Source of the DNA: Guillardia theta CCMP2712
Taxonomy: Eukaryota; Protista; Cryptophyta
Length of the DNA stretch: 64,000 nucleotides
Assembly: GCF_000315625.1 (NCBI RefSeq)
Contig: NW_005434671.1
Location: 414,078 to 478,077 of the forward strand
Direction: 5' to 3'
The notes beneath the pieces were generated by a model. The model did no database searches. It saw only the letters and a program-made list of their open reading frames with translations, and was not told the DNA's origin. The position numbers and the translations under genes are program-made. Below are positions 21,490-28,882 of the stretch, piece after piece. The first letter of the stretch is position 1. Each line of letters starts with the position of its first letter.

Positions 21490-22260
21490 TCATCATTTCG
21501 GGATCATTTCAAAGATACTACTGTGACAATCGAGCCCCGGGCCCGAGTCCCGGCGGCCGCAGGCGGCCGCTTCCGGATCGGATGGGCCGCGGCGCCGCTG
21601 GGCTCAGTACCGCCCGGCGCGCGGCCCGGCGCCTCGCCGGATGCCGCCATGAAGTGGGCCGGCGGCTGGTGGGCCCGGGCCCGGGCCCGGGCCCGGGCCG
21701 GGCCGGTTGATGTCGGTGCCGGCTCAGTACGCCGGTCACGACTGTTCACCCGGTCACTAAGTCACGGGCAGTGCAGCGGCGTTAACTGTGACGGCCGCGG
21801 GTCCGAAGTTTTGGAGACCCGGACTCGACACCGGGTTTACTAGTGAAAGCCAAGCCTTAGAGTCAGCAAGTGCAGTGCCGCGGCACTGAGCCGGCCGGCC
21901 CCAGGCCCTGTGCGGCGGCTTTTCAGTTTGACTCGGAGCCTGGCAACTTTCAACTGCCGCTCGGATGCCGCAGCTGCCTCCACCCTCCTGCCGCGTGCTT
22001 TCAACCCTTCGGCCGCTCCATCCTGCCCGGCCCTGGAAAGCGCGGCCCCCGCGCGTGACAGGCTGGACTGCCGCCGGCCGGGCTGTGATCACACTGGCTG
22101 CCGCGCCATGATTTTAAGTTACTCCCATGATTACCGTACTAGTCACTCCTCGTACTGATTTTTAACTTAACTTTGACTCACCGTAGAAGAAGTCCGAGGG
22201 CCAGCCGGGAGGGCGCGCCGGAGCCCGGCTCGGACATAGCGTTGCCGTTCCGTATCCTTG
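21490..22260. other. GC/CCGG-rich non-coding island 2
   Basis: (GCCCGG)n, GACTCGG and CAGT words; contains motif copy 3 near its right edge. Confidence 0.7.
22147..22176 (-). repeat. Dispersed motif copy 3
   Basis: + strand TCCTCGTACTGATTTTTAACTTAACTTTGA. Confidence 0.85.
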
Positions 22261-23281
22261 TCGGATCAGTTAACCAGGGTGGTTCTCATAGTAGTTTTAG
22301 TCAAATTCAAGCGGCAAGAGAAAATTGAGCTAAAAATGTTGGCTCCGTCAATTTATGTACCTTTTTCGTTGCCAGGGGCTGCCGGGCCATCCAAGACAAG
22401 AAGGGCGATGTTGAGCAAAACCTTCCTCTATTTGATATGAATAGGCGTGTATAGTTGACTAAATAATCATGAGGAGGCTCGGGGTAGGTATTCAAATGAT
22501 TTGAATCTTTCCAACGGCCTCCAGCCCGTGTTGAGGGGTAGGGGGTAGTGCAAACTTCTCGTATCAATCTAAAACACTTGTAAACGACCTCACACTTGCC
22601 CCGGTCTCTTCCCTATCCCACTACTCCCAATGTACTCAGGGACTGTTTGCTCAGCTGCTGAGCGCAGTCAAGGACCATGGCCCCTCAATGCTAACTCCTG
22701 AAACTGCCAGGCAAGTACTGAGATCAAACAGCTCAATTCTTGGCTGAGAATCACACCTATAGTAGGTTGAATGTGTAAGGTATGCATCTCATCGAAATTT
22801 GCACTTGCGTACCAAAGCACTCATCAGCTATAGGTGATGGTTGTTCACTTCCAGAAGAAGGGAAACATGAAGGGAACCGATCAGAGAAGCAACCTTCGAA
22901 GACATGAAGGAAATTCGATTCTCCTTGTTGTGTTGACGCCCTAGCTTCCTTTACCTGAATGCTTCGTCGGTTGAATAAGAAACATATTTCAAGAGACTTC
23001 CTGTTGCTTTGCCATGATTGCGTTTTTTGAGGCTTCTCCCAACCTATTGTAATATGGCGGTGTCATTTGTGAGGAGGTGAGGAGTTTGAGAGGCTGGGGG
23101 AAGGAGAGGGGAGGGGTTGGAAGGGAAATGGACGCCTGGGAGGCCAGGCTAGTTGACATGCCTGATCGCTGCGAGAGGAGATGCCGGAGGAGAGACCGTG
23201 TTTACTCAAGACCACTAGCGAGGAAGGCAGGAGGGCGAGGAGGACATGAGAGGAGAGGAAGGAGAAACGGGTAGAGACGGT

Positions 23282-24220
23282 TTACTTGACAGCACTAATG
23301 AGGAAGGGATGCTTCAGAGCCTCCAGTGCTGTAATCCTCGTGCGGGGATCGATGTTGAGGCAGCAGTTGAGGAAGTCCCAGATCGCATGTTTCTCATCCA
23401 CCTCCAGCCAGTCCTTGCATCCCGCATGCGCGCCCAGGGAGCTTGACAAGGTCCGCCATGTTTGCTTGAAACCGCGGGCATAGCTGAGATGCAGTTCCAA
23501 TGGTGGAATCTGAATGACATCAAGTTAGCAACCTCAGGCCTCCCGCCACCATATCACCCTCATCCTCATCCTCTTGATACAACAACGCCGACGACAACAA
23601 TTTTACCTTAACGTCGAGGAGCTTCCACACAGCATCCATGCTCTTGATGTACATGCGCAAGCTGCTCAGACAGTCAGACAAGCGCACTTCCAAGGTACAC
23701 AAAGAGCGTACCCGTAGATCTCCATCGTTGCCGTGACTATGTCGTTATACTGGAACCATTGGAACTGTGTCGTGCGGCACAGCAGGGTAAGCAGTACTAC
23801 CCCAGCAGCCCACACGTCCACTGCTGTGGTCTGGCACTGCATGCCCATGAGCACTTCGGGCGCTCGGTATCCCCGAGTTCCCGCGCGTTTGACTGGACGT
23901 TCGAATTTGACCCCTGAGTTCCTCACTGTCACCGATGCGTTCGTCTTGCTGACGCCCAACATGATCCGCCTCTTCGCCATCTGCTGCGCCATCTCTAGCT
24001 TCTCCTGCTCCTTTTGATTCCGCGAGGAGCGAGAGCTGGCCGTAGAAACCTCACAGGGCAAGATGTTGCCGATGCTGCGGCCTGATGACTGCATTTGTTT
24101 CTCTGCCAGCCCAAAGTCCACAAGCAAGTACTTCTTATTCCTTCTGTCGTAGAGGAAGTTATTCAATTTCACGTCTCGATGTATAATAAATGTATAATGT
24201 ATAAGACAGTTCTTGCTCAA
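23282..24220 (-). pseudogene. CDC7: CDC7 kinase, C-lobe only (5'-truncated)
   Basis: IIHRDVKLNNFLY....KYLLVDFGLA, kinase insert, RAGTRGYRAPEVL, TTAVDVWAAGV, RITALEALKHPF. No GxGxxG or VAxK exon is visible upstream. Confidence 0.7.
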
Positions 24221-24339
24221 GACCGAGTTTAACTAAGTAATGCACACTGTGACACGAAACCACTGAGAATTGAGGCCCAGCACTGCACATGAGAGACTCC
24301 CGACAGTATGCTAGAATATGAAACTCAGTCAAGCATCAT

Positions 24340-25010
24340 TGCAACGCCGCCGCTGTTCCGATGACACGGACCGGGTACGGCCCGGTACCGCCGGGCATTG
24401 CCGCCGCGTGGGGCCGCCGCCTGGCTCGGAACTTGACTCTCAACGTGACCGTTCAACGGTTGACTCACCGGCTACGGTACCCGGTAGCCTTGAAGCCTCA
24501 GAGGTCCCGGGGAGTCCGGCTCGCCCGGCCGGGCAGCGCCGTCGGACCTTCAACCGAGTTTTCAGCCTGTGTTCAATTAACGGGAGTCAGCGGGGCTATC
24601 TGATCGGACTGGCCGCATGGCTGGCATGCTGCCACTCGGATCCCGGCATTAATCAGCAGTCGGCCGACGGTGACGGCGCCGTCTCACTGAGCCTCCGCCG
24701 GGCGGCGGCCGCGGCGGCCGGGCGCCGGAGCCCGAGCCTGGCAGTCACTCAGCGGCTGAGTGCCGCGCCAGCCCGGCGCTGACCGGACTCAGTGACTCGG
24801 CCTTGGAACCGTCACGGTGCCTGCTTGCCAGCGCCGGGGCGGCCCCGGTACTACGCCGGGTAGCCTGAGTCACCGGGTGTCAGACACAACTTGAACAGTC
24901 GGAGGTCAACATAACTTAACATAACATGGCATGCCAGGCTTCTGAGTCGGAACTTGGAACACTCAGTGCGCCGCCCGAAACTTTCAAATGATTCAGGGCC
25001 GGGCGGCCAC
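24340..25010. other. GC/CCGG-rich non-coding island 3
   Basis: Same word composition as islands 1 and 2; runs into the hairpin array. Confidence 0.7.
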
Positions 25011-25036
25011 AAAAAATATTTCACTGTGGAACCGTG

Positions 25037-26213
25037 AACTTGAAAATTGAGGGGGTGTTCGGCCTGAAATCTTTGTGCCAGTGTCACGCTCCTCCAAGTT
25101 TCAAGTTGTTCCATATAGTTTGGAGCAAGTCCAACCTACATGGAACAACTTGAAAATTGAGGGGGTGTAAGAACTCGCCGCCGATAAGTTCTTGGAGACG
25201 GCGAGAACTTCCGAAGTTCAGGGTATTGCGTCTCATCGGTAGACGGGGGCGAACTTGAAGCTCAGCGACTCAGATGCAAGTGGGCTTTGACATAGGTCTG
25301 GAATTAGCAGTGAAAAGGGGGTGAGGAGGACACGTGTCCAGGGCGCTGCCACGGTGCATTCAAACCGGTACTTGGTCACTGGAGTCACGGTTGCAACTTC
25401 CGGGACTGAAGGGGAGGTGACTGCTGTGAATAAAGGAAGTGTTGGTGGTGTCAGTGTGTGGTTCTTCTGACTCGGAGCCTTCTATCATCATCAGTGAAGG
25501 TGTTAGAGACTGCACAGCTGTGTATCGTTGAGATGAATAAGGTTGGGGTAAGGATCTCAGGTGTACTGAGAGATAGTGTTTGCCGTGGATCTTGGGTTAA
25601 ATAGAGTATCTGGCCAGTGAGGTGGAGGTTGATTCGATTAGCCGGGGTGTTCGGCCTGACTCAATCATTGTGTGTCACGCTCCCGGAGTCCAAGTTTCAA
25701 GTTGTTCCATATAGTTTGGAGCAAGTCCAACCTACATTGAACAACTTGAAAATTGAGGGGGTGTTCGGCCTGAAATCATTGTGTGTCACGCTCCTGCGGC
25801 CTGAAATCATTGTGTGTCACGCTCCTCCAAGTTTCAAGTTGTTCCATATAGTTTGGAGCAAGTCCAACCTACATGGAACAACTTGAAAATTGAGGGGGTG
25901 TTCGGCCTGACTCAATCATTGTGTGTCACGCTCCCGGAGTCCAAGTTTCAAGTTGTTCCATATAGTTTGGAGCTAGTCCAACCTACATGGAACAACTTGA
26001 AAATTGAGGGGGTGTTCGGCCTGAAATCATTGTGTGTCACGCTCCTGCGGCCTGAAATCATTGTGTGTCACGCTCCTCCAAGTTTCAAGTTGTTCCATAT
26101 AGTTTGGAGCAAGTCCAACCTACATGGAACAACTTGAAAATTGAGGAGGTGTTCGGCCTGAAATCATTGTGTGTCACGCTCCTGCGGCCTGAAATCTTTG
26201 TGTGTCACGCTCC
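25037..26213. repeat. Tandem array of five palindromic (hairpin) units with 31-bp subrepeats
   Basis: Core TTTCAAGTTGTTCCATATAGTTTGGA-GCAAG-TCCAACCTACATGGAACAACTTGAAA at 25099, 25695, 25832, 25946 and 26083; spacing of the last four is 137/114/137. Confidence 0.95.
25169..25643. mobile_element. 475-bp non-coding segment inside the array flanked by GGGGTGT direct repeats (insertion with TSD, or LTR-like)
   Basis: GGGGTGT at 25162-25168 and 25644-25650; removing the segment restores the regular unit junction. The left junction reads TTGAGGGGG-TGTAAG, resembling PPT + LTR start. Confidence 0.6.
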
Positions 26214-26299
26214 CATCGCAAGTCAGCTTTGATGGCCATTATGGCCTTCACAGGCGTGGCTGGCCCTCCGAAGCTCAATCATGATGCATCGCCAATACG

Positions 26300-28210
26300 A
26301 TATCAAATATCAAAATGAAAAATATCAATGTTGAAAGTTTCCCGCCACTGTGAACTCTGCGAAGCCGTACAGATATGAGGATGTGCAGCGTTTGACAGAG
26401 CAAGACAAGTCAGGTGAGCATTATCTCTTTTTTTCATCGAAATTATCACGGGAAGAGATCCAAATGACGTGTTCTTGATGCAGGTTGGAATGATTTGCAG
26501 CCTTTGGCAACTTGTATGAGATTGATGAACGGGTGAAGACTTTGGCAAGTGCCCAACCAATATTACAAACCGGTATCCAGGAGTACGTAGACGTACCAGT
26601 AAGCCGCCCAGCATACAAAACTCTCGAGACAATGGCTGCATACGAAGGGGGTTTCGACACATCGCAGAACTGTCCCGATGTGAAAAGGTTGTGACATGAA
26701 ATGGGCACAAACAAAGATAAGTTCAGGACTCGGGAGTCGATCAGGTCTAGGCAAAATATTGACATGGTCATCTCACTGCATGGAAGAACATGCAAAACTG
26801 AAGGAAAAGCTCAACGGAAAGTTCTAAATGAACAGATACAGCGCATTTTAGCAGTCACGGTCGGAGCAGCTCGATGCTTGAAACAAAGATGATCCTCAGT
26901 ACAATCGAATGATGACAAGTAAGTCCCGTGGTTCGTGAAGGATTCTTCATCCAATTCTTAAGGATGTGTTGGAACGATGAAACATTTTGCAAATCACCAA
27001 TTTCATCACACTGACTGATGCATCATGTAAATATTACTGGTGTGAACTTGCATCAGATTCTGTTCATCGGATGAGCCGCTACCAAGCAGTTGATGTCACA
27101 GCAAACAAGAGAGCCGTTTTGAAGATGTTGATATTCCTGACCGTAGAGCATTCAAGATGTGGCCACATGTCACATGCTTCTTGGTTAACGCAGATACACC
27201 CTCGCCAGGCAAAAGATGGAACGTCTTCAGGATTACAGGGAGGTCGGTTGTGCTTGTACCCTGATTGTAACTCTTCTAATAAAGATATGATAACCTGAAT
27301 GTGCAATTCTGTTTGTTGATTCACAGTGTTTGCGACTCGATTGCAATCATCGAGTGCTTGCTCTGTTGAACAAGGCACTCCTCTGTAGAGCCATGCGACA
27401 AGAACACTACAGTTGCACGGTAGCATTGCGACACCAAGACAGGATTGATCCGATGAACGTCTCATTTATTGATACGCAAAGGCATCATCTGCACATTGCT
27501 TCATTTCTGACTAGGTTTCTGTGCAATCGAAATCCTTGTGAAAATATCATGACAAAGGAAAAATTTGAAGCGAAACGGAAAAATCATCGAAATATGATCA
27601 TAGATATAGTGATTCATGATCAACAACGGTTCTCTACAGTCATCTATGCGGGCAGGAACAGTCATCTTCTGTGCAAACGTCTCTTCATGTATCGTTGAAC
27701 GGTTGAGTGCATGTAAGACTTGCCTCCATAGAAAGGTGAAGTGCATGAATCCTGACTGTAAGACTAGAAGAATTGAAAGCAAGTGATGACATGAGAACAC
27801 ATATCTAGACAGAAAAGTCGCTCAAGGTACAGCTGGATACAAATTTCTCACAAATCACAGTCATGCATTTGAGCGCAACGTGCAACCTACGGCAATTTGA
27901 ATAAAGGGTCAATCAGAGTTGATTCTGTTCAATGGTGTATCGATTATCAATTCCTTACCTGATCATAAAAATTTCATCTTGTCTTCGAAGAATATTTGCA
28001 AGTACACCCGCGGATTGTTTGAACCTAGGGTGCATATTCCATTGCAGGATGGATGATTCAAACCTTGGCCCAACCTGTAGAGTTGAGAAAGAAGCTCGAT
28101 CATCTCTTACAGGTATGATATGAGATCTTCATCTCATTTCTATCTCAGTTGGGTTGGATTCGAAGTCTCTCAATATCAAAGTTCATCCTGGTGAGTCAGG
28201 AAGGCACCAT
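26300..28210 (-). CDS. Orphan multi-exon gene or degenerate gene of unknown function
   Basis: Several GT-AG-bounded open segments (e.g. VGPRFESSILQWNMHPRF.., ORF 27079-27465); no recognisable domain. Confidence 0.3.
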
Positions 28211-28882
28211 TTCATCGCTTCTTGCTCGTCCAGGGAGAGGGGGCTTGGGGAATGAGAAATGGGTGTTACCCCCACCCCCTATTGTAGAGTTTCAAACTCG
28301 TTCAAAGGTGGGTAGTTGAGGGTGCTCCATACCCACCCCACCACCCAAAATGACTCAAACGGAGGGGTTCTCGGATCCGAAGGAGTCCCGCCTCGATCAC
28401 CCCCTCTCATTTGAATTCAAGATGGTTCAGGCCGACCCCACATACAGGCTTGCAGTTTTCTTATGTATGCCCATATGATTTGATCGGACAGGCCCCAGGT
28501 TCAAGGGATGAAGCAATTCACCAGCATGCTTGAAGATTTTTCATGGGAGTGGGGTTATACTTGTACCGGATGTGTACAATACATAGGGGAGAACCCCGAA
28601 TGGTACCAAAAGAGTACCAAAGTCACATGGTTCGGACTGTACTAACTGGTACCAAGAAATTGTACTCAAGAAGACCCTACCCCTGAAAAAGTTCTGCTTG
28701 GCTCTTCGTGATTTGAATTCGGAACACGGTCGGAAGACCCACCCCGCCCCCACATGAGGCGTGGTATGCGTGGATTTGAATCTACCACCCTCACCGCGAA
28801 ACGTTTTAGAGCTCCAAGGTCAATTGAGAAAGGCAACGCTATGACTCGAGCCTGAAGGCCGGCGCGGAGCCTGTGACTGCTT

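Follow-up and report, generated by a model that had tools for sequence, protein, structure and literature searches.

Solo LTRs of Ty1/copia retrotransposons that lie nested in other transposons are the usual by-product of unequal recombination between LTRs. Fungal copia elements of the GalEa type possess a Conserved Hairpin Site in place of the primer-binding site (PBS), the mechanism of which is unknown (PMC5445492), and in published tandem TRIMs the repeat and the inner domain alternate along the array as TDRx_I(x-1) (PMC6934838). For mobile repeats bounded by terminal inverted repeats (TIRs), tandem-repeat-containing MITEs and non-autonomous TIR elements provide the comparison system, in so far as they are represented in the reference list of PMC6934838 (Satovic and Plohl 2013). 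The locus described here lies in a window of 64,000 nucleotides, the whole stretch of DNA analysed, from the cryptophyte Guillardia theta CCMP2712, and was searched against the 669 contigs (87.1 Mb) of its own genome. The finding, a solo LTR of copia type within the tandem array of a TIR-bounded repeat, is an ordinary one; neither Guillardia copia families nor the 6.6-kb repeat were described in the literature that was searched.

The motif GGGGTGT occurs at 25162-25168 and again at 25644-25650, leaving 475 bp (25169-25643) between the two copies, and unit 1 of a hairpin array ends in TTGAGGGGGTGT at 25168 while the unit picks up with TCGGCCTGA at 25651. The window coordinates thus bear out the bracketed 475-bp segment inside a hairpin array that had been reported in the first-pass annotation, and the AATAAA which it had placed within the segment is located at 25429-25434. 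Nested inverted repeats had also been described at the start of the segment. Both pairs are indeed present, AAGAACT/AGTTCTT at 25169-25175 and 25188-25194 and CTCGCCG/CGGCGAG at 25174-25180 and 25200-25206, but one is interleaved with the other, not nested within it, and folding at the 5' end is no better than for shuffled sequence (z -1.7).

The segment is present once in the window and in many copies across the genome, with at least 46 matches to the 475 bp, about twenty of which are end-to-end copies of ~424 bp. Every copy whose flanks were read (30 in total) starts with TGTAAGAAC and ends with GATTCGATTA; ten run on into one common internal sequence that opens with a perfect palindrome of 22 nt, and a common purine tract, CAGGGAGGG, precedes eight. 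Pairs of copies on the same strand are found 8.0-8.6 kb apart on C57, C105 and C14, and between the members of each pair Pfam detects RVT_2 at 127-129 bits (cut-off 31.6 bits) with rve located ~1.9 kb 5' of it at constant offsets; in the C57 element both domains are part of a single open frame of 2042 amino acids. Identical 5-bp target-site duplications (TSDs) stand on either side in three cases, AAGAT for the pair on C14, CTCCC for that on C57 and ACTTT for one lone copy on C1. The shared termini, the TSDs and the order of rve followed by RVT_2 between the pairs identify these as the LTRs of a Ty1/copia family. The segment in the window is homologous to them from end to end, which upholds its earlier interpretation as LTR DNA of a copia-type retrotransposon, and the genome-wide search that had been proposed for it finds many copies with shared termini, some of them flanking copia interior, instead of a single-copy sequence. 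It is described by one feature:

25166..25640, + strand: solo LTR, Ty1/copia, TGT...GATTA, 475 bp (end-to-end LTR homology)

The window LTR aligns with the family LTRs from its first to its last base (1-472 of 475) and is ~93% identical to them at aligned positions, the lower BLAST identity of 76% being due to ~15 gap blocks. It retains the family termini, with TGT at 25166 and GATTA ending at 25640, as do 5', 3' and other solo copies. From an ancestral length of about 430 bp it differs by about ten private short insertions (52 bp in all) and a 26-bp deletion. The family palindrome is absent after the window LTR, there is no adjoining copia interior at the locus, and Rfam gave no match on the LTR. 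With nested copia solo LTRs in general it therefore has in common the full-length homology, the termini and the lack of an interior, as well as paralogous empty sites and the 5-bp duplication habit of its family. It is unlike them in that its presumed duplication is offset by three extra bases, in that it has been multiplied as the cargo of a TIR repeat and not by retrotransposition, and in that it is heavily remodelled by short insertions.

In intact members of the parent family the perfect 22-nt palindrome directly abuts the 5' LTR and has a fold z of -3.4 (seen at L008:1470-1505 on the - strand and at nine further 5' LTR loci). A TGG primer-binding site was not found after the 5' LTR at the loci read. 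With a palindrome and no TGG at its 5' LTR, the parent family appears to resemble the GalEa elements (PMC5445492); in contrast, the palindrome is a property of intact elements on other contigs and not of the solo LTR in the window.

A larger repeat contains both array and LTR, and the following features were defined for it:

22235..28843, + strand: host repeat, 6609 bp, holding array and LTR (20-kb query, counts of termini)
22235..22246, + strand: left 12-bp terminal inverted repeat CATAGCGTTGCC (homology boundary)
28832..28843, - strand: right 12-bp terminal inverted repeat (homology boundary)
23282..24220, - strand: protein-kinase C-lobe fragment carried by the host repeat (Pfam)

A 20-kb query returns many copies of the host repeat at 91-99% identity with sharp ends at 22235 and 28843, and its termini occur in the genome at least 17 times (left) and at least 21 times (right). 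The 12-bp TIRs are perfect and lie exactly at the homology boundaries, the first base being conserved in 17 of 17 left ends, and the left flanks of the copies are unrelated to one another with the exception of one duplicated pair. The bases flanking the window copy, GGA and ACT, give no sign of a target duplication. Pfam found no transposase, the ten open reading frames of at least 70 amino acids in the host repeat yielding the kinase fragment only, and no autonomous partner was identified. The kinase fragment lacks the N-lobe, is 94-100% identical among host copies and is interrupted by stop codons in some of them (two in LTR-less copies); possible parent genes, 65% identical, are found on C276, C307 and C389. 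Because of the sharp TIR ends, the many copies in unrelated flanks and the kinase-only reading frames, the host is read as a non-autonomous TIR-bounded mobile repeat that carries a gene fragment and an internal tandem array. As far as tandem-repeat MITEs are represented among the references of PMC6934838, the host repeat is like them in its short TIRs, its internal array, the transposase that was not found and its many copies, some internally deleted, and unlike them in its size of 6.6 kb, its kinase fragment and the lack of a visible duplication at the window copy.

Two minor observations concern the surroundings and the right arm of the host repeat. The sequences flanking it (22200-22234 and 28844-28870) are GC-rich and form an imperfect inverted repeat of one another, which gives the impression of an insertion into the centre of a palindromic GC island. 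Part of the right arm, 26836-28375, recurs at 84-85% identity on seven other contigs where the remainder of the repeat is missing, and represents either a shared module or a family of related repeats.

The LTR divides the array into two parts:

25036..25165, + strand: part-unit and unit 1 of the hairpin array, left of the LTR (sequence reads, unit search)
25648..26213, + strand: remaining array of hairpin units, 106-137 bp each, with a 31-bp sub-duplication (unit search, folding)

The hairpin of the unit folds at -18.3 kcal/mol (z -6.4), and Rfam returned only sub-threshold miRNA-like matches to the hairpins (27-44 bits against cut-offs of 50-245). All genome matches to the 114-bp unit fall inside copies of the 6.6-kb repeat, and comparison of the unit with 1.5 kb of copia interior at either end revealed no similarity (z at most 0.6). 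Within 25651-26213 the array contains two unit variants that differ by short insertions, one of which (CTCC-C-GGAG) is itself a palindrome around a pivot base; the variants have spread through duplication of a 251-bp higher-order unit. The sequence GGGGTGTTCGGC is the ordinary unit-to-unit junction and occurs six times in 24900-26300, so that any insertion there that duplicates the G-run acquires a bracket of the GGGGTGT type. The bracket is thus not a chance match. Its coincidental part is only that the first bases of the LTR, TGT, equal the TGT of the unit, which has a likelihood of about 1 in 64 and would be better explained by a microhomology-based event.

Copies of the host repeat exist both with and without the LTR. 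Arrays with four to five intact junctions and no LTR were read in the copies on C47, C61 and C105, and those on C14 and C184 were judged to be LTR-less likewise by search coordinates. Ten copies carry the LTR at one junction and in one orientation (the window, three on C31, and those on C46, C96, C51, C20, C415 and C114). Their left junctions are alike, a G-run followed by TGTAAGAAC, and so are their ancestral right junctions, which consist of GATTA, GCC, GGGGG and the TGTTCGG of the unit. The duplicated target and the extra bases were assigned as follows:

25161..25165, unstranded: GGGGG at the end of unit 1, as left copy of the presumed TSD of 5 bp (sequence read)
25641..25643, unstranded: GCC, three additional bases that separate the end of the LTR from the right-hand duplication copy (junction reads)
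25644..25647, unstranded: right duplication copy, GGGG here and GGGGG in other copies (junction reads)

The bracket is accordingly made up of a presumed 5-bp duplication of the G-run together with the TGT of the LTR on the left and that of the unit on the right, with GCC as an extra and one G lost in the window. The five bases directly after GATTA are GCCGG, the G-run being reached only beyond the extra GCC. The first-pass annotation had proposed a sequence-targeted insertion with a TSD of 7 bp. An insertion relative to paralogous arrays without the LTR is supported, but neither of the two qualifications is: the habit of the family is a duplication of 5 bp, seen here as GGGGG on the left with the right copy displaced by GCC, and the known TSDs (AAGAT, CTCCC, ACTTT and TTAGC) have no common motif. 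The last of these belongs to the copy C31b, which contains a second solo LTR, 504 bp long (L002:997-1500, - strand), that comes from a sister family whose initial 11 bases are identical. This second LTR sits 3 bp inside the end of the first and is flanked by a perfect 5-bp duplication, which demonstrates that such insertions do happen in the 6.6-kb repeat. Two different LTRs are found within 8 bp of one another in C31b, and a preference of copia cDNA for landing at the G-run/TGT junctions of the array is a weak possibility.

It is proposed, with a probability of roughly 0.75, that the segment derives from a single old copia insertion in the array, of which a solo LTR was left, and that the host repeat spread this LTR to at least ten loci. 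A copia retrotransposon would have integrated at a unit-to-unit junction by the usual integrase route with a 5-bp target duplication, and LTR-LTR recombination would then have removed its interior. The GCC may have been added afterwards at the right junction; since it is common to all LTR-bearing copies, it would have arisen before the host repeat amplified. The later multiplication of the host would have allowed the LTR to hitch-hike to its present loci, including the window, where each copy could have gathered short GC-rich insertions of its own. The inferred order of events is insertion, solo LTR, GCC and amplification, whereas the homology of the LTR, the termini of family and host, the 5-bp habit, the empty sites and the shared junctions are direct observations. 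Other points count against this proposal in addition to the match of the two TGT sequences. The duplication is not clean, with GCC offsetting it on the right; no full-length copia element was seen at this array junction in any copy, so that the two-LTR intermediate would have to be deduced from the solo state; and one copy, C31c, is a mosaic of the LTR-bearing and LTR-less lineages. The LTR is most likely a functionless passenger now.

The mosaic copy bears on the polarity of the change, which could also be reversed if the LTR were ancestral to all array-bearing copies and the LTR-less lineage had lost it by deletion between 8-bp repeats. Two direct copies of GGGGGTGT would permit such a deletion to be precise, and untidy deletions do occur, as is seen from an LTR without its first 21 bp (C51) and from copies in which its 3' part (C415) or its 5' half (C114) is missing. 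Over 1.4 kb at the left end the LTR-bearing copies cluster at 99.4-99.7% identity and a second group, at 98%, is made up of four LTR-less copies, with which the LTR-bearing C31c groups. To the right of the array (787 bp), however, LTR-bearing copies are 99.5-99.9% identical and C31c (L006, L067; C31:544484-551108) joins an LTR-less-type left arm to an LTR and a right arm of the LTR-bearing type. Its arms stem from two lineages, which marks it as a product of recombination or gene conversion between copies. In the right-arm tree the LTR-less copies on C47 and C61 and that on C105 lie across the only deep split, with C105 on the longest branch. C105 is the most divergent array-bearing copy and has a clean array of 106-bp units without an LTR, with TGA instead of TGT at its junction, which makes one gain of the LTR a more parsimonious account than repeated loss, of which at least two events would be needed were C105 the outgroup. 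As the trees are short (0.8-1.4 kb) and unrooted or midpoint-rooted, loss between the 8-bp repeats is assigned a modest probability and regarded as improbable next to the proposed insertion.

A smaller chance still is given to the segment being the 3' LTR of a full-length insertion that was truncated, with GCCGG as the surviving right TSD. Here a deletion between the GGGGGTGT of the unit and the GGGAGGG-TGT junction of the element would have removed the 5' LTR and the interior. Such an origin would explain why an exact TSD is missing, why the left junction looks like a PPT and why GATTA is directly followed by GCCGG. It would, however, require a target that already read GCCGG (unit junction GCCGGGGG), which no empty junction displays, and a large deletion ending exactly at the start of the LTR. 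LTR-LTR recombination is moreover the common route to single LTRs (Vitte and Panaud 2003, as cited in PMC6934838).

The tandem layout of the locus, with a short internal-looking unit beside the LTR and a purine run in front of it, also recalls TRIMs and tandem TRIM arrays (PMC6934838). It differs from these in possessing a single LTR, in the lack of a recognisable PBS and of independent copies, and in that its units belong to another element. Units end in a G-run; the window sequence after the LTR contains no TGG or tRNA-like site, its fold relative to shuffles has a z of only -1.0, and there are no tRNA genes in the window. The second model of the first-pass annotation, in which a TRIM-like mini-retroelement used the ~110-bp hairpin unit as its interior and its other LTRs collapsed via GGGGTGT, has the G-run directly before the TGT of the LTR on its side, as in the parent family, whose palindrome in place of a tRNA site beside the 5' LTR makes a hairpin-primed derivative thinkable, but it is highly improbable given that each locus has one LTR with units adjoining each other without LTRs between them and without the TDRx_I(x-1) alternation of published arrays (PMC6934838), that the units occur only within the host repeat and not as dispersed copies with TSDs of their own, that they neither open with the family palindrome nor resemble copia interior, and that diverged copies carry arrays devoid of the LTR. 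The odd structure is thereby resolved into two ordinary parts, which removes the case for a hairpin-primed mini-retroelement. For annotation, the analysis defines an unnamed copia family by its LTR termini, its 5-bp TSD and the palindrome that replaces the PBS, and an unnamed 6.6-kb non-autonomous repeat with exact ends.

The remodelling of the LTR is part of a wider pattern which became apparent when five LTR-bearing copies were aligned over 5 kb, and to which two features correspond:

24235..25734, unstranded: hypervariable block spanning the GC island, the first array units and the LTR in full (alignment of copies)
25205..25219, + strand: private 8-bp insertion (25205-25212) that creates a 7+1+7 palindrome with the adjoining bases (LTR alignment)

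Within the block, which is ~1.5 kb long and sharply bounded, there are 15-26 indel events per 250 bp, although the arms of the copies are ~99.5% identical. Per 250 bp of arm (22235-24234 and 26235-27400) there are 0-2 such events and 0-6 variable columns, and the 3' limit of the block is close to that of the LTR. In the block the near-identical copies have each acquired at least ten private insertions, which measure 2-16 bp with a GC content of 54-70%, and none is present in young autonomous LTRs. It is conceivable, if rather doubtful, that the block owes its state to an insertional mutator that acts fast and on targeted regions, such as a defence-like activity against retroelement-derived or island DNA, and not to relaxed repair. 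If so, the 6.6-kb repeat family would amount to a built-in control for measuring the mutator. The repeat copies in any event offer an internally controlled view of the short-insertion process of this genome, with the variable block set against quiet arms. Some of the private insertions are inverted copies of neighbouring bases around one pivot base, as at 25205-25219. When insertions were compared with shuffles, five to six of the 26 private insertions gave palindrome arms of 5-7 bp and the mean arm was 2.1 as against 1.3 in the shuffles, which makes the formation of palindromes a property of a subset of the insertions and not a general one.
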